A stretch of 64,000 nucleotides of DNA, from the sequence record ON529851.1; one strand, written 5' to 3'. A model generated the notes under the pieces. It was not told where the DNA came from and made no database searches. It worked only from the letters and a program-made list of their open reading frames with translations. The position numbers and the translations under genes are program-made. This document shows positions 22,496 through 64,000 of the stretch, one piece after another (position 1 is the first letter of the stretch; each line of letters starts with the position of its first letter).

Positions 22496-22531
22496 TGTAA
22501 TGGAGACACGGGCTGTCAAAAAGTCTGGCAG

Positions 22532-22560
22532 ATTGTGCCAGACATATTGACATTCGTCAA
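22532..22560 (-). promoter_or_regulatory. Lysis-cassette promoter with a dyad over the -35 box
   Basis: TTGACG-N17-CACAAT; the dyad TTGAC-N4-GTCAA spans 22547-22560. Confidence 0.65.
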
Positions 22561-22595: not shown

Positions 22596-23720
22596 TCAGT
22601 CCTCGGGCGGCAGCAGCGTCAGGCCCGGCGGCACGGGCGCGCGAGGATCGATCCCGGCGGCGGTCCAGGCCCGATGCGGCACCTGGAGCGTCGATCGCCC
22701 TTCCAGCGCGCGCTCCAGCGCCTGGCTGAAGCGGGGCAGGGCCAGGCCGGTGCCGTAGGTCCAGATGTGGTCGCCGTGCCGGCGCAGGCCGAAGGAGCCG
22801 ATCTCAATGCCCGCCAGCATCAGATCGCGGCCCTCGTCGGTCTTCTCCTGGGACAGGGCGGCCTCTGGCGCGCCGAGGCGAAGCGCCAGTGCATGGGCGT
22901 CGGCCAGCATCGCCTTCCAGCCCGTGTCGCTGGCGTAGGTGGTGTCGTAGAGTTCGACCTTCATGAAGGTCGGAAAGTGCAGGTCGTCCTCGGCGTCGCC
23001 CAGCCGGAAGCAGGGCGTGCAGGCGACCATGGGGCCGTGGCCGATGGCGCCGTCTTTATCCAGGTGGAGGAAGGACTGTTCGGCGGAGCCCACCAGATAG
23101 CCCAGTCCCTCCACCCGCGCGGCGTATTCGGGGTTCGGGCAGGTGATGTCGACGGTGTCCTTGGACACCGCCCAGGGCGTCTCGACATAGCGGTAACCCT
23201 CGGCCTCGTAGAAGGCCAGGGCCTCGCCCAGCAGGGCGTAGTCGATGCGCGGCATCCGGGGCAGGTCTTTGTGAGCCGTGATGACAGGATGGCGCCCGCG
23301 CATCTGGCTGATCTCGTTGCGGATCACGCCGACCCAGCGCGACTGCTTGGGCGAGCCGGTCTCGGCGTGATCGATCGCCTCCAGCGGCTGGTCGTTGAGG
23401 TGCGCCAGCGGGGCCGACAGGCCGTAGCGCTTGTGAATTTGCGCGCGCACATAGTCGGGCCACTCAATATCGCTGGCCCGATAGAAGCGCCAGTCCGGCG
23501 GCGGCGGCGGGCTCGGACGGCGGACCTGCTCCGCCGCTATCAGGGCGCGCAGCTTGGCCTCCAGCTTGGGACCGTAGCCGGATTGGAACCAGGGCGTGGG
23601 CCGCGCCATCATGTCGTCCAGCGTCACCGTGGGGTGAAACTCCGAGGTGAAGACCGCCTCCTCGAACCGCTCCAGGTCCAGGTCGATCACAAAAACAGAA
23701 CGCCAGTCAGCGTCGTCCAT
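22596..23720 (-). CDS. Class II aminoacyl-tRNA synthetase-like catalytic core (SerRS-like, no evident tRNA-binding domain) with an unrelated N-terminal extension
   Basis: Motif 1 GYRYVETPW; LVGSAEQSF; motif 2 TPCFR..D..H...FMKVEL; GIEIGSFG; motif 3 YGTGLALPRF. Confidence 0.75.
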   Translation of the reverse strand: MDDADWRSVFVIDLDLERFEEAVFTSEFHPTVTLDDMMARPTPWFQSGYGPKLEAKLRALIAAEQVRRPSPPPPPDWRFYRASDIEWPDYVRAQIHKRYGLSAPLAHLNDQPLEAIDHAETGSPKQSRWVGVIRNEISQMRGRHPVITAHKDLPRMPRIDYALLGEALAFYEAEGYRYVETPWAVSKDTVDITCPNPEYAARVEGLGYLVGSAEQSFLHLDKDGAIGHGPMVACTPCFRLGDAEDDLHFPTFMKVELYDTTYASDTGWKAMLADAHALALRLGAPEAALSQEKTDEGRDLMLAGIEIGSFGLRRHGDHIWTYGTGLALPRFSQALERALEGRSTLQVPHRAWTAAGIDPRAPVPPGLTLLPPED

Positions 23721-24183
23721 TGACGAAAGCCCTTTCGGTGATGTCGGCCATGGTGTCCAGGTCCGCCATGGTGAGATTGAAGCGGGCGAGATAAGCCCGG
23801 ATGGCGCCCTGGAGGTCCGCCAGTTCGACCAGGCCCATGATGGTGGCACCCTGCTGGACCGCGTCGGCGAACTCGGCCGCCTCTTCGATGATCTTGGAGG
23901 GTTCGCCGAGCACGCCCTTGGCGATCGGGGTCAGGTGGTAGCCCGGTCTAACTTCCTCAGCCGCCTCGAACGGCCTCATCACCTGGGCGAACTCGTGGGC
24001 GGTCATTCCGCCGTCGTTCAGGCCGTCAAGGGCTGCGCTGGCATAGCGATCATATTGGTCTTTGTTCGGCCCTTCTCGCGACGTATCGCCGAACTCGCGC
24101 AGGCTCTCGTAGTCATGGCCGTCCCGGCGCGCGAGATGCGTCACGATTGCCGTGAACTGGCGTTGGTAGAGGTCGTCTAACAT
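23707..24183 (-). CDS. MazG/HisE-like all-alpha NTP pyrophosphohydrolase-domain protein
   Basis: C-terminal GEPSKIIEEAAEFADA..Q...LVELADL acidic metal-binding pattern; overlaps the aaRS-like start. Confidence 0.65.
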   Translation of the reverse strand: MLDDLYQRQFTAIVTHLARRDGHDYESLREFGDTSREGPNKDQYDRYASAALDGLNDGGMTAHEFAQVMRPFEAAEEVRPGYHLTPIAKGVLGEPSKIIEEAAEFADAVQQGATIMGLVELADLQGAIRAYLARFNLTMADLDTMADITERAFVNGRR

Positions 24184-24189
24184 CCGCCA

Positions 24190-24218
24190 CGGTTACGTCA
24201 GCGACCCGCTGGTGTCAA
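24190..24218 (-). promoter_or_regulatory. Promoter predicting a leaderless mRNA for the MazG-like gene
   Basis: TTGACA-N17-TAACCG ends 6 nt before the ATG at 24183. Confidence 0.55.
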
Positions 24219-24844
24219 GCAACCTGACGGTGGTTGACGGGAATCTCGTCATCCGCCAGCAGGTCCGCCAGCGGGCGTTCCGGAATATAGGTCAGCGACG
24301 ACGGCGTCGCGCGCACGATCTCGATCCCGCGTGCCTGGAGCGCCGCGATCAGGGGCGGATAGAGAGGGCCGAAGGCCTTGGTGTAGTTGGTTTCCTTGGT
24401 CGGCACCGGATGACCGGCGTGCCAATGGGAGGCCGTGCCGCCCTGGAACCCCATGTCGTAGCCCAGCAGGACGATCCGGGCGACGCCCAGGTGCAGACAC
24501 AGGTTCAGCGCCATGTAGCCGCTGTCGTGTCCGGCGAGGTGTTCAGGATCAGTCGACAGCGCCGGGCCGCCGGCCTCGAAGCGCATGTCGCGGTAGAGGC
24601 GTTCGACCCGACGATCGACGGTCGGCGAGGGCGTGAGGATGCGGCCGGAGAAGGTCGGCGGCACGCGGTCGCGATGCCAGTCCCACCAGCGGGCGTCGGC
24701 GAAGAAGAGGATGTCGGGGTCGGGGACGATCTGGTAGGCGTTGTTCAACGCGATCGTGCGTCGGTCGCGCAGTCCGCTCAGGTCCATGCCCTTCAGGCTC
24801 GGCCCGCCGCCGATGATGTAAGCCGTCTCGCCGCGCCAGTCCAT
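24215..24844 (-). CDS. DUF115/MptE/Maf-like nucleotide-binding transferase
   Basis: AYIIGGGPSL, IALNNA, FFAD, SGYMALNL...IVLLGYDM. Confidence 0.7.
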   Translation of the reverse strand: MDWRGETAYIIGGGPSLKGMDLSGLRDRRTIALNNAYQIVPDPDILFFADARWWDWHRDRVPPTFSGRILTPSPTVDRRVERLYRDMRFEAGGPALSTDPEHLAGHDSGYMALNLCLHLGVARIVLLGYDMGFQGGTASHWHAGHPVPTKETNYTKAFGPLYPPLIAALQARGIEIVRATPSSLTYIPERPLADLLADDEIPVNHRQVA

Positions 24845-24924: not shown

Positions 24925-26004
24925 CTATTGCGTGACCTTCCAGCCGAACTCGGCCGCGTTGACTTCGGCGGCGGTCCAGGCGCCGCCGCCGGGGCGGGGC
25001 AGCACGGTCTGCTCGGCGCGGTAGGCGTTGGTCATCTCAATCAGGACCGCCTGGGGCGCCCCATCCGCCTCGGTCCCCGCCAGCCGGGCGACCGGCGCGA
25101 TCTTGCGCGGCGACATGCCCGGCGTCCGCGCCGTCATCGTGGCGACGACCGCGTGAACGGTGGCCGCCGCCGCCCCCGCCGACAGGTCGCCGTAGACGTA
25201 GGTGTCCTTTGACCCGACGGCGCTGATCGCGGCGTAGGAGGTGTCGTTGTTCGGCACCACTTCGGAGACCGCCTGCCAGGCCGTCGCCGCGCCGGTCGGC
25301 GTGGACTGGGTCGTGGTGCCGGGACCGGTCGGCCGGATCGTCTCCATGACCAGGTCGCCCAGGAAGCCGTTCATCGTCGATCCTGCCGAATTATGGATTT
25401 GAGGATCGTCAAGTCGCCAGCTACCGTTCGTGTGGAACGAGGCGCTGTAGATCGACTTCGCACCCGCCTGATAGAGGTCTCCGGTGAAGTCGATGACGGT
25501 GGCGCCGTTGAGGCGGATTTCGGCCGTGCCGCCCGTATCGTCGATATTGGCGACGCGCATCTCAACGCGCAGCCACGCCCCCAGCGCCAAGGGCATGTCA
25601 GCCGTGGCGATGACCGTATTGTTCCGCAGCAGCACAAGCTGCCCCGTGTTGTTGATCCCGACGCAAACCCAGGTGTCCAGCGTGCCGGCGGGGTTCGATC
25701 CCGTGGTCGACGACGGGCCGGTATTGACGGCGCTCATGAGGTGCCGAAGGTTGGACGGGGTCGACAACATGTAGATGGAGGCGGACAAAAACAACGTGTC
25801 TTGGCCCACCCCGCAATGCGGCGTCGGGAGGGCTTTCGAAAGAATGCCCTGGGCGGTCACCGTAGACCCGATGAGGCTGACGCCCCCCAGGCGCCCGGTC
25901 GTGGTCGAGAGCGTCTGTGAGGTCGTCGGCGCTGCGTCCCACTTGCGCGCGAGGTCGGCGACCGCCGCATGGGAGTCGAGAGAGTCGTTGAAGATATGCG
26001 CCAT
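24925..26004 (-). CDS. Tail-associated protein with a ConA/LamG-like beta-sandwich
   Basis: WLRVEMRV...AEIRLNG; beta-rich; lies at the end of the fibre operon. Confidence 0.6.
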   Translation of the reverse strand: MAHIFNDSLDSHAAVADLARKWDAAPTTSQTLSTTTGRLGGVSLIGSTVTAQGILSKALPTPHCGVGQDTLFLSASIYMLSTPSNLRHLMSAVNTGPSSTTGSNPAGTLDTWVCVGINNTGQLVLLRNNTVIATADMPLALGAWLRVEMRVANIDDTGGTAEIRLNGATVIDFTGDLYQAGAKSIYSASFHTNGSWRLDDPQIHNSAGSTMNGFLGDLVMETIRPTGPGTTTQSTPTGAATAWQAVSEVVPNNDTSYAAISAVGSKDTYVYGDLSAGAAAATVHAVVATMTARTPGMSPRKIAPVARLAGTEADGAPQAVLIEMTNAYRAEQTVLPRPGGGAWTAAEVNAAEFGWKVTQ

Positions 26005-26007
26005 GTC

Positions 26008-27081
26008 TTAAGGGGTCCGAATGATTTCAATCGTTTGTTGGGTCGTCTGGACGGCCTGTGCTGCGCGGGCCACGAGGACCTCCACCGTCTCTTGGGTCAC
26101 GCGGGTCGGCTGGGCCGTCCGCACCGTGAGGGCCTCCAAGACGTGATGCGTCAGGCGCACGGGTTGGGGATCGTCCGCGTGGGCGCGGATGACCATCACG
26201 CCTGCACGCCCCGCCGTGGCGTAAAGGCCGCCATAGCCGAGTTCGCTTCCGGGGTAGTCTGTATCGGTGATGTTGACCGGCGTACGGCTGATCCCGCCCC
26301 CCGCAAATTGCGGCAGGTCGTAATAGAGATGGTAGCCGTCCAGGCGCCACGACGATCCGCCGCCCGCCGGACCGCTGTAGAGGGTGTCGTTGCGGTAACC
26401 GCCGCCGCCGCCGTAATAACCGCCGCCGCCGCCGCCACCGCCGTTCTCAAGCGCCCGGATCGACGTCATATAGCCCTGCCCGCCGTGCAGATAGCCGCCG
26501 CGCGACAGGGGATTGGCGTTGAGCGGCAGGCCCTCGCCCCCCTCTGACTGGGCGCCGCCCGTAGCGTGCGCGCTGGAACCGCCGACGGCGCCGCCGCCGC
26601 GTCCCGCAAAGGTGTTCAGGTTGCCGGCCCCGCCGCCGCCGGCCGCCACCAGGGCCAGTTGGCCCTGAAGCCACAGGCGGGTTGAGCCGCCGCCGCCGCC
26701 CGAGATGGAGGCGATCGTTGAGCCTGTGTGACGCCCGCGACCGCCGTCGCCGCCGTCAGGCCAGCCGCCATAGCCGCCGCGTACGTCGCCCGTTAGGAGG
26801 CCGAGTTCGCCGCCGCCGCCGACTTCGATCGCGATCAGGTCGCCCGGTGTCACCTCGAAGACCCGAGAAATGTAACCCCCCGCGCCGCCGACGATCGAGC
26901 CAAAGGTTCCGTAGGGGACGCTGGCGCCCCCCGCGCCCCAGGCCTTGACCTCAATTAGGCGACACCCTGCGGGGATTTTCCGAATTTCACGGCTCCGCGT
27001 GAAGTTGACGATATTCAGTCCCAGCGCGAGCGGGGCGGCCGAGGCGTTGCGGGCGGCGGCGACGAAGCCGGGAATCAACAT
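26008..27081 (-). CDS. Glycine-rich-domain tail fibre-associated protein
   Basis: VKAWGAGG, GAGGY, GGWPDGG, GGGGGS, GGGGGYYGGGGG. Confidence 0.75.
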   Translation of the reverse strand: MLIPGFVAAARNASAAPLALGLNIVNFTRSREIRKIPAGCRLIEVKAWGAGGASVPYGTFGSIVGGAGGYISRVFEVTPGDLIAIEVGGGGELGLLTGDVRGGYGGWPDGGDGGRGRHTGSTIASISGGGGGSTRLWLQGQLALVAAGGGGAGNLNTFAGRGGGAVGGSSAHATGGAQSEGGEGLPLNANPLSRGGYLHGGQGYMTSIRALENGGGGGGGGYYGGGGGYRNDTLYSGPAGGGSSWRLDGYHLYYDLPQFAGGGISRTPVNITDTDYPGSELGYGGLYATAGRAGVMVIRAHADDPQPVRLTHHVLEALTVRTAQPTRVTQETVEVLVARAAQAVQTTQQTIEIIRTP

Positions 27082-63330: not shown

Positions 63331-63411
63331 TGGCGGGGGCGGAGGGAATCGAACCCCCTGGTTGACGCCTTCGGAGGGCGTTGCCTACATTCCGGTCGGC
63401 ACTTCGCCCCC
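63331..63411 (-). tRNA. tRNA-Arg(CCG), atypical D-arm
   Basis: Acceptor GGGGGCG/CGCCCCC, G73, CCA; anticodon stem ACGCC/GGCGT with loop CTCCGAA; T-loop TTCGATT. Confidence 0.7.
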
Positions 63412-63449
63412 GAGGCGGTGGGCCGGGCGGACCCGGCGTTAAGTAAGAG

Positions 63450-63531
63450 TGGCGCCCAAGGCAGGATTTGAACCTGCGTTTGCAACTCCGCTACGGATAA
63501 GGCCTTCGTAGGACCCCTCGGTTACTTGGGC
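63450..63531 (-). tRNA. Aberrant tRNA-like RNA (possible anticodon CCU, no U33)
   Basis: Perfect acceptor GCCCAAG/CTTGGGC, G73, CCA and T-arm GCAGG-TTCAAAT-CCTGC; D-arm and anticodon arm non-canonical. Confidence 0.55.
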
Positions 63532-63534
63532 ATT

Positions 63535-63618
63535 TGGCTCCTATGAGAGGACTCGAACCTCTAAGTCTTGCGACGGTCGATTAACAGTCGACTGCGTTTA
63601 CCATTCCGCCACATAGGA
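63535..63618 (-). tRNA. tRNA-Asn(GUU) with a long variable arm
   Basis: TCCTATG/CATAGGA, G73, CCA; anticodon stem GTCGA/TCGAC with loop CTGTTAA; V-arm GTC-GCAA-GAC. Confidence 0.85.
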
Positions 63619-63643
63619 ACAAACTGAATACTGATGTTTTACC

Positions 63644-63717
63644 TGGTTCTGGCTCTAGGAATCGAACCTAAATCTCGGAGACCAAAACTCCGCGTGATAC
63701 CGTTACACTAAGCCAGA
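63644..63717 (-). tRNA. tRNA-Gln(UUG)
   Basis: TCTGGCT/AGCCAGA; anticodon stem CGGAG/CTCCG with loop TTTTGGT; encoded CCA. Confidence 0.9.
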
Positions 63718-63728
63718 TCAGGAAAACT

Positions 63729-63806
63729 TGGTAGGAGGTACTGGATTCGAACCAGTGAAATGTCGGTATGTAACACCGATGCCTTGGGCCGCTTGGCGAA
63801 CCTCCC
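63729..63806 (-). tRNA. tRNA-Val(UAC)
   Basis: GGGAGGT/ACCTCCT, A73, CCA; anticodon stem TCGGT/ACCGA with loop GTTACAT. Confidence 0.85.
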
Positions 63807-63851
63807 ATGAAAGAGTAGCGTATCTCCACTACTCAGTGACAAAAGTAAAGT

Positions 63852-63928
63852 TGGTCCTAGCACCAGGATTTGAACCTGGGACCGAGCGGTTATCGACCGC
63901 GCGCTCTACCAAACTGAGCTATGCTAGG
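63852..63928 (-). tRNA. tRNA-Ile(GAU)
   Basis: CCTAGCA/TGCTAGG; D-arm GCTC/GAGC; loop TCGATAA; encoded CCA. Confidence 0.92.
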
Positions 63929-63932
63929 GCTG

Positions 63933-64000
63933 TGGTAGCGGATACAGGAATCGCACCTGTGCTTGTCGGCGTGTCATACCGATGCCTTTCTACTTGGCTA
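63933..64000 (-). tRNA. tRNA-Val(GAC), 5' end cut off by the window edge
   Basis: Anticodon stem TCGGT/GCCGA with loop ATGACAC; T-arm ACAGG-TGCGATT-CCTGT; A73 and CCA. Confidence 0.75.

Follow-up and report, generated by a model that had tools for sequence, protein, structure and literature searches.

Truncated paralogues of aminoacyl-tRNA synthetases (aaRS) are known for unexpected chemistry, with EF-P modification, asparagine synthesis and carrier-protein loading as examples, and Z-genome phages carry MazZ and PurZ, a MazG-type pyrophosphatase that supplies a nucleoside monophosphate and an ATP-dependent enzyme that attaches aspartate. Here we describe a gene pair with points of likeness to both kinds of system, located in a 64,000-nucleotide (nt) stretch of sequence record ON529851.1 (the window). 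The window matches Brevundimonas phage vB_BpoS-Marchewka (348 kb; Dolichocephalovirinae) at 100% identity, and four sister phages are 90-98% identical to the region. The upstream gene, MARCHEWKA_05510 (23707..24183, minus strand), encodes a HisE/MazG-like protein of 158 aa, and the downstream gene, MARCHEWKA_05500 (22596..23720, minus strand), a class II aaRS-like protein of 374 aa. A preliminary description of this DNA, made from its letters alone, had delimited two overlapping open reading frames (ORFs) here, and GenBank has coding sequences with exactly those boundaries, each annotated "hypothetical protein". As read from the sequence, the HisE-like stop and the aaRS-like ATG (at 23720) lie within a 14-nt overlap (23707..23720, minus strand). 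Given their near-constant adjacency and occasional fusion in other genomes, the two proteins are very probably one two-part enzyme.

Like EpmA/PoxA, AsnA, the SerRS-like amino acid:carrier-protein ligases and HisZ, the aaRS-like protein is a stand-alone class II domain that lacks tRNA modules and has a dedicated partner. However, none of the models for those families matches the window protein above noise, and its partner is an all-alpha pyrophosphatase instead of EF-P, a carrier protein or HisG. The family also differs from HisZ in keeping its catalytic residues, and from the carrier-protein ligases in having a HisE-like neighbour, with no PP-binding family among the Pfam matches of 32 partners. 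For the logic that we propose below, the closest precedent of which we are aware is MazZ with PurZ, although PurZ has the adenylosuccinate-synthetase fold and not that of an aaRS, we know of no fusion of the two, and nothing in the window points to DNA base replacement. A looser parallel comes from a single phage enzyme that carries out tRNA-dependent DNA hypermodification at adenine with host aminoacyl-tRNA (PMC13219725): there too, a phage is reported to channel activated amino acids into nucleic-acid chemistry, but the enzyme is unrelated, and no homology or linkage to the window pair was seen.

The linkage of the two genes was assessed at 117 loci, 80 from IMG/VR and 37 from one-genome-per-species GTDB genomes, each scored with clean profiles of both domains. 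At 114 of them, a HisE-like coding sequence adjoins the aaRS-like gene on the same strand. Most commonly it lies immediately upstream with an overlap of 4-17 nt; in 4 loci it lies downstream, and in 17 loci the two domains form a single fused aaRS/HisE-like ORF. Fusions occur in both orders (20 aaRS-then-HisE and 1 reverse when locus and database proteins are counted together), and the database proteins alone include both (P0183, P0198 and P0199 versus P0173). After dereplication at 50% identity, the partner is kept in 54 of 56 clusters and fusions are present in 7. No third neighbour is conserved across all lineages among the surveyed loci. The existence of fused forms rules out that two unrelated genes are neighbours by chance. 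The functional coupling suggested in the preliminary description, for which it had named a gene-neighbourhood survey as a check, is thus far stronger than that description could know: the pair co-occurs elsewhere, with a reach that extends across large phages, and the aaRS fold on which the suggestion also hung is present (below). In two loci, L018 and L024, tblastn places HisE-like coding directly upstream of the aaRS-like gene, where the ORF caller gave no intact ORF.

Conservation was counted over 430 unique aaRS-like cores and 149 unique HisE-like domains. In the aaRS-like cores, the motif-2 arginine (R239) is conserved in 99.8% and the motif-3 arginine (R330) in 97.9%, with P182 of motif 1 at 95%. 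The residues of the S-A-E-Q loop reach 99-99.8% and the Glu and Ser of the E-x-G-S strand 98.4%, so that the S-A-E loop, F-x-K-x-E and E-x-G-S elements all fall within 98-99.8%. In the HisE-like domains, K97, E100, E101, E104 and D123 are invariant (100%), and E120 reaches 99.3%. This near-invariance of the catalytic residues on both sides argues for an active catalytic centre in each half, and not for a degenerate sensor of the HisZ type.

The class II catalytic core of the downstream protein spans residues ~156-345 (22686..23255, minus strand), as delimited by its AlphaFold2 model, Foldseek, profile searches and conservation. The model has a predicted local distance difference test (pLDDT) score of 92-98 over residues 160-340. 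Foldseek returns at least 500 matches in the PDB at E <= 0.001, and the best 50 of these, those listed, are all PylRS catalytic domains (best E 1e-10, probability 1), which confirms the fold that the preliminary description had proposed to look for by this route. Against BFVD, members of the same family (e.g., the phAPEC8 protein) come first, followed by giant-virus SerRS, the highest-ranking true aaRS among these viral predicted structures; the matches include viral Ser-, Pro-, Asp- and Gly-tRNA ligases. An alignment of 33 family sequences displays all three class II motifs and the invariant residues, in agreement with the motifs 1-3 read earlier from the letters. The core of ~215 aa proposed at that time stands as a core but not in its size, the conserved part being ~185-190 aa long.

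By sequence profile, the closest solved structures are SerRS cores (class IIa; 1.4e-5), and the alignment pairs the family's S-A-E loop, the C-F-R of motif 2 and the F-x-K-x-E strand residue for residue with the same SerRS elements. SerRS differs in its core of ~300 aa, against ~185 aa here, and its longer, less acidic motif-2 loop; it also has a tRNA-binding arm, and no such N-terminal coiled coil is present in the model or the family alignment. Moreover, PylRS cores rank higher in Foldseek, and the NCBIfam serS model (TIGR00414) gives the window protein 11.4 bits against a cut-off of 301.65, covering the motif 1-2 region only, so we reject an identity as seryl-tRNA synthetase. A histidyl identity was likewise rejected: neither HisRS nor HisZ is found among the Pfam, NCBIfam or PDB sequence matches or the listed Foldseek PDB matches, and the surveyed neighbourhoods of the pair contain no HisG gene or recurrent third gene of a histidine kind. 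One giant-virus HisRS does appear in the BFVD list, at rank 11 (E 2e-3). In PHROGs, residues 158-338 match phrog_4806 ("histidyl tRNA synthetase") at 1.4e-44. Some relatives reach the Pfam thresholds for tRNA-synt_2 or tRNA-synt_2d; the window protein itself has no match in a Pfam search or a single-sequence PDB search, and a profile of the C-terminal half of the core, aimed at motif 3, gave chance matches only against solved aaRS. The preliminary description had also noted the lack of a tRNA-binding domain, and indeed no tRNA- or anticodon-binding domain is found in Pfam or NCBIfam scans; most relatives, at 180-200 aa, consist of the core only. The downstream protein is therefore a distinct minimal class II aaRS core, neither a seryl- nor a histidyl-tRNA synthetase. 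The "histidyl" label used by PHROGs and RefSeq seems to have been transferred loosely, and the database names "histidyl tRNA synthetase" and "seryl-tRNA synthetase" should be regarded as misleading for this family.

The remainder of the protein, residues 1-155 (23256..23720, minus strand), is a lineage-specific N-terminal extension with a proline-rich insert. It is absent in most homologues and is modelled with low to moderate confidence. Caulobacter-phage relatives have a Pfam RNA_pol_A_CTD domain (PF03118) at this position; the similarity of the window's own extension to this alpha-CTD was rejected, as its comparison with the CcrPW homologue is not significant (E 0.28).

The upstream protein is a member of the all-alpha nucleoside triphosphate (NTP) pyrophosphatase superfamily and is nearer to HisE/PRA-PH than to MazG proper. 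Its HisE/PRA-PH-like domain comprises residues 76-158 (23710..23958, minus strand), as placed by Pfam, AlphaFold2, Foldseek and conservation. The preceding helical extension, residues 1-75 (23959..24183, minus strand), is limited to the Marchewka-type group, most homologues beginning at the GYH motif. The AlphaFold2 model has a mean pLDDT of 88, rising above 90 in the HisE-like domain, and its Foldseek matches include the HisE structures 1yvw (probability 0.98) and 2a7w (0.99), the latter with a root-mean-square deviation (rmsd) of 1.7 over 57 columns; the rmsd to HisE structures ranges from 1.7 to 3.0. HisIE (0.85-0.92) and iMazG (0.5-0.7) follow at lower probabilities. The E-values of these matches are weak (0.4), as expected of a 60-residue helical match. 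Pfam PRA-PH (PF01503) scores 15.2 bits on the window protein, under the gathering threshold of 21.3, and matches weakly in 27 of 32 family members (best E 5e-4), whereas MazG (PF03819) matches in 2 of 32. The MazG-like pyrophosphatase read earlier from the letters thus holds for the superfamily, and HisE-like describes the protein more exactly. In PHROGs, residues 80-158 match phrog_6408 (7.6e-28); a single-sequence PDB search gave nothing useful. The protein shares with HisE and the small MazG-type enzymes (iMazG, DCTPP1) the helical hairpin fold and the acidic EExxE...ExxD metal site. The family alignment also has an invariant lysine and, unlike HisE, an invariant N-terminal G-Y-H motif and C-terminal Arg motif of its own, and no histidine-pathway genes stand beside it in the surveyed loci.

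Both genes are widespread in phages. Among 50,697 phage records, tblastn detects the aaRS-like protein in 276 and its HisE-like partner in 267, and the genus distributions are nearly identical (aaRS-like/HisE-like: Escherichia 112/112, Acinetobacter 61/59). Caulobacter, Pectobacterium, Cronobacter, Brevundimonas, Klebsiella, Erwinia and Campylobacter are further host genera, and eight Microcystis phages head the aaRS-like list only. A profile search of 1.84 billion representative sequences retrieves 1,213 clusters (50% identity) at E <= 1e-30 and ~200 more up to 1e-3; as judged by this search, the aaRS-like family is large and stands clearly apart from canonical aaRS. Among cellular genomes, a pattern scan finds the family in 37 of 185,579 species genomes, a lower bound since only two peptide patterns were used. 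These copies are mostly from bacteria of the candidate phyla radiation (CPR) and DPANN archaea, and it is in these two groups that most of the fusions are found. The surroundings of one archaeal locus (L118) are those of an ordinary cell, with a D-aminoacyl-tRNA deacylase (2.5 kb away), an EamA transporter and an E1 dehydrogenase, and a Mesorhizobium copy shares an island of low GC content with genes for an AAA ATPase and a metallophosphoesterase. The module is, from these cellular contexts, not strictly viral.

Of the functions put forward in the preliminary description (an aminoacylated nucleotide, protein or tRNA, or the countering of nucleotide-signal defences), all of them hypothetical, it is nucleotide chemistry that the genes around the pair in other genomes favour. 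In phAPEC8, helicase, HisE-like, aaRS-like and ribonucleotide reductase genes follow one another with overlapping stops and starts, and 17 metagenomic viral loci have a RecD2-like helicase, the pair and then a class I reductase alpha subunit. A thymidylate kinase gene stands beside the pair in CcrBL9, thioredoxin and glutaredoxin genes in a T4-like Acinetobacter phage, and a divergent Nudix gene recurs beside it in Saccharibacteria loci. In eight DPANN/CPR loci (L083, L095, L098, L100, L102, L107, L116 and L118), all from genome bins, a radical S-adenosylmethionine (SAM) gene encoding 221-228 aa accompanies the fused aaRS-HisE gene on the same strand, and that of L118 (8813-9478) overlaps the fusion gene. 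Its best NCBIfam matches, all sub-threshold, are MoaA, a tungsten-cofactor maturase and the prokaryotic viperins; it has no close relative among solved structures. MoaA and the viperins act on nucleoside triphosphates. A third domain, phrog_4784 (~185 aa), is found in 11 of the 117 loci, where it is joined to the HisE-like domain at one end or the other or is encoded between the two genes. These loci are L004 (5421-5984) and, with fused forms, L012, L021, L025, L033, L043, L050, L052, L084, L087 and L104 (proteins P0223-P0250). It has an H-D-H ... H motif and one weak PHROG match to "cysteine dioxygenase" (1.5e-5), with no PDB or Pfam match, and on this basis it may be a cupin-type oxygenase. 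The domain is absent from the window.

The explanation that we tentatively favour, while holding it to be short of probable, is that the pair combines a tRNA-independent amino-acid-adenylating ligase with a nucleotide pyrophosphatase, both acting on one nucleotide-derived metabolite. The two genes would then encode the two halves of one enzyme system. The aaRS-like half, a minimal class II core that descends from that of SerRS or resembles it most, would bind ATP and a small alpha-amino acid (or a similar carboxylate), form the acyl-adenylate and pass the activated acyl group to a non-tRNA acceptor. The HisE-like half, as an all-alpha pyrophosphohydrolase, would cleave a substrate of the nucleoside-triphosphate type at its alpha-beta bond. 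The two halves would share one nucleotide-derived small molecule: the pyrophosphatase would either supply a monophosphate that the ligase decorates or trim a triphosphate that the ligase has already modified, and the product would be an amino-acid-bearing nucleotide. The analysis shows the folds, the intact catalytic residues and the obligate linkage with its fusions; the independence from tRNA, the nucleotide as acceptor and the order of the two steps are what we infer. Sequence features indicate that the acceptor of the aaRS-like core is most likely not tRNA: the protein has no RNA-binding module, the cores are acidic (median isoelectric point 5.15, 4% basic), and their motif-2 loop, which in true aaRS contacts the acceptor stem, is short (11-12 residues) and acidic (D+E 26%, K+R 6.5%). 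On a wider scale, it is possible, if somewhat doubtful, that the pair belongs to an undescribed tRNA-free pathway joining an amino acid to a nucleotide, common to large phages, DPANN archaea and CPR bacteria, with tailoring by the cupin-like oxygenase or the MoaA/viperin-like radical SAM enzyme in some lineages.

Several points weigh against a ligase and a pyrophosphatase sharing a nucleotide-derived metabolite. The subclass of the core is inconsistent, being SerRS by sequence, PylRS by fold and PheRS or Asp/Lys by Pfam. The second residue after the motif-2 arginine is E or D in about two-thirds of the family, and the window's clade has G241 there (followed by D242) in place of the acidic residue. 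The two activities have no obvious chemical need for each other, and pyrophosphate released by the pyrophosphatase would oppose adenylation. The roles of both enzymes are also predictions. Finally, 24 of the 80 viral loci have a tRNA gene within 6 kb, ~12 of them directly flanking the pair on the same strand (a raw count, with no null model), and phiTE carries a gene for a CCA-adding enzyme 3-4 kb from the pair. These last two observations speak for a role directed at tRNA, which we rank second and consider unlikely: the minimal core would aminoacylate or otherwise act on the 3' end of a phage or host tRNA or tRNA-like RNA, and the HisE-like partner would serve that repair or charging route by processing a nucleotide or a pyrophosphate at an RNA end. 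Such a role would also suit the location of the pair inside the tRNA arrays of CcrBL9 and CcrSC (L007, L011 and L125), the further nucleotidyltransferase within 4 kb of it in phiTE, the D-aminoacyl-tRNA deacylase of the archaeal locus and the helix-hairpin-helix domain of alpha-CTD type in the Caulobacter-phage relatives, which could bind nucleic acid. However, the 180-200-aa majority form has neither a tRNA- nor an anticodon-binding domain, the acidity of the core and its short loop fit tRNA poorly, and 70% of the viral loci have no nearby tRNA. No cognate tRNA emerges either, as the flanking isoacceptors vary by lineage (Met/Val, Gln/His, Gly/Thr/Glu/Asp, Pro), and since the tRNA arrays of large phages occupy the same early/middle accessory regions, the proximity may be incidental. 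In the window itself, the nearest tRNAs are ~39 kb from the pair, which, together with the many pair-bearing phages that lack a nearby tRNA and the variable isoacceptors, leaves unsupported the idea in the preliminary description that the ligase charges the odd tRNAs at 63.3-63.6 kb.

Several aaRS make diadenosine tetraphosphate (Ap4A) as a side reaction, and it is conceivable, albeit quite unlikely, that the core makes compounds of this type and the HisE-like enzyme cleaves these or related signals, tuning or countering nucleotide signalling during infection. This would fit the intact state of the two catalytic centres, the chemistry of both enzymes at the alpha-beta bond of nucleoside triphosphates, and the Nudix gene of the Saccharibacteria loci, whose family includes Ap4A and nucleotide-sugar hydrolases. 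Yet the strict conservation of the amino-acid-binding loop suggests that an amino acid is the true substrate and not a cofactor, and there would be no point in fusing a synthase to an enzyme that hydrolyses its product. Neither protein matches a defence-system model in PADLOC, nor do the fusions, the cupin fusion and the upstream neighbour, and we found no link to such signals in the literature. Transfer of the amino acid to a protein, perhaps the HisE-like partner itself or a host factor, strikes us as improbable, although there are established cases of truncated class II paralogues that modify proteins. In its favour, the small, helical partner is nearly constant and has invariant Tyr, His and Lys outside the metal site, and one family member has a weak NCBIfam EpmA match (E 0.057); but a passive carrier would have no need of a pyrophosphatase metal site conserved at 99-100%, the Pfam matches of 32 partners include no carrier family, and the associated genes are those of nucleotide enzymes instead of translation factors. 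We give very little credence to the aaRS-like protein being a non-catalytic regulator that senses an amino acid and controls the pyrophosphatase, as HisZ does with HisG. The precedent is apt insofar as HisZ, itself a class II paralogue, works with a nucleotide enzyme from the histidine pathway, and the present pair likewise includes a HisE-like protein. The ATP- and Mg-binding residues of the core, at 98-99.8%, are nonetheless conserved in a way that a degenerate sensor would not require, no HisZ, HisRS or HisG model matches, and HisG genes are missing from the neighbourhoods.

Our search of the literature, a comparative genomics paper on jumbo phages included, found no description of the pair. 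NARP3 (PMC13464706) is an unrelated PnuC/NadR system. By its constancy, the linkage makes of two "hypothetical proteins" a single enzyme system that can be tested, and it corrects a widespread annotation, in a family that reaches phages of E. coli, Acinetobacter, Klebsiella, Campylobacter and Microcystis as well as some DPANN/CPR genomes. It points to amino-acid-nucleotide chemistry that is not on current maps of phage auxiliary metabolism; if the proposal is true, nucleotides bearing an amino acid would make up a new class of metabolite, one that plays a part in infection or in how cells with reduced genomes function.

In Marchewka, the pair is flanked by tail/fibre-type genes upstream and a lysis cassette downstream (lysozyme, holin, M15 peptidase and spanins). 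This bears out the placement between fibre and lysis genes given in the preliminary description, and Kikimora and CcrColossus keep the pair at the same position. The leaderless-type promoter of its own that the same description had assigned to the pair finds no support. The spacer to the upstream gene is only 31 nt, and a sigma-70 consensus scan called no promoter ahead of the pair. A TTGACA hexamer in the upstream spacer region (24184..24218) lies at 24218-24213 (minus strand), overlapping the stop codon of the upstream gene, and the hexamer 17 nt downstream of it is a poor -10 match. At the other end, a scan finds a terminator-like GC-rich hairpin with an 8-pair stem and a T-run (22543-22513, minus strand) between the aaRS-like stop and the lysozyme start, suggesting that the transcription unit of the pair probably ends ahead of the lysis cassette. 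Within 22513-22560 (minus strand), a promoter-like site (TTGACG and CACAAT spaced by 17 nt, plus an upstream TG) overlaps this hairpin, and the 100-nt gap ahead of the lysozyme gene in which both sit is a possible boundary between the unit of the pair and the lysis cassette. For Ma-LMM01, the main text of the transcriptome paper places the primase gene adjoining the pair in the middle class; gp131 and gp132 do not appear in that main text.

Directly upstream of the pair lies a gene for an MptE/DUF115-like protein of 209 aa (24215-24844, minus strand), which matches phrog_4603, labelled "alpha-2,3-sialyltransferase", and may have a role in virion or fibre glycosylation. We rejected it as part of the module, since Kikimora lacks it and CcrColossus has other glycosyltransferases in its place, along with a methyltransferase gene. 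Two genes for fibre-associated proteins (24925-26004 and 26008-27081) come next on the same strand, followed by one for a very large tail protein. At the far end of the window, ARAGORN calls tRNAs for Asn, Gln, Val and Ile (63535-63928), of which the tRNA-Asn (63535-63618), with its 84 nt, is unusually long. Two further, weak tRNA-like matches, absent from the ARAGORN calls, come from Rfam: one at 63453-63531 (32 bits) and one, to the tmRNA model and below threshold, at 63331-63411; one more tRNA in this region (63331-64000) is cut by the window end. The tRNA array around the pair in CcrBL9 contains an 87-nt tRNA-Lys. The second of the two fibre-associated proteins (26008-27081, minus strand) is a glycine-rich, 357-aa protein annotated as lectin-like, and it coincides with a 2-kb bin in which the GC content is 0.71 and the GC skew is reversed.

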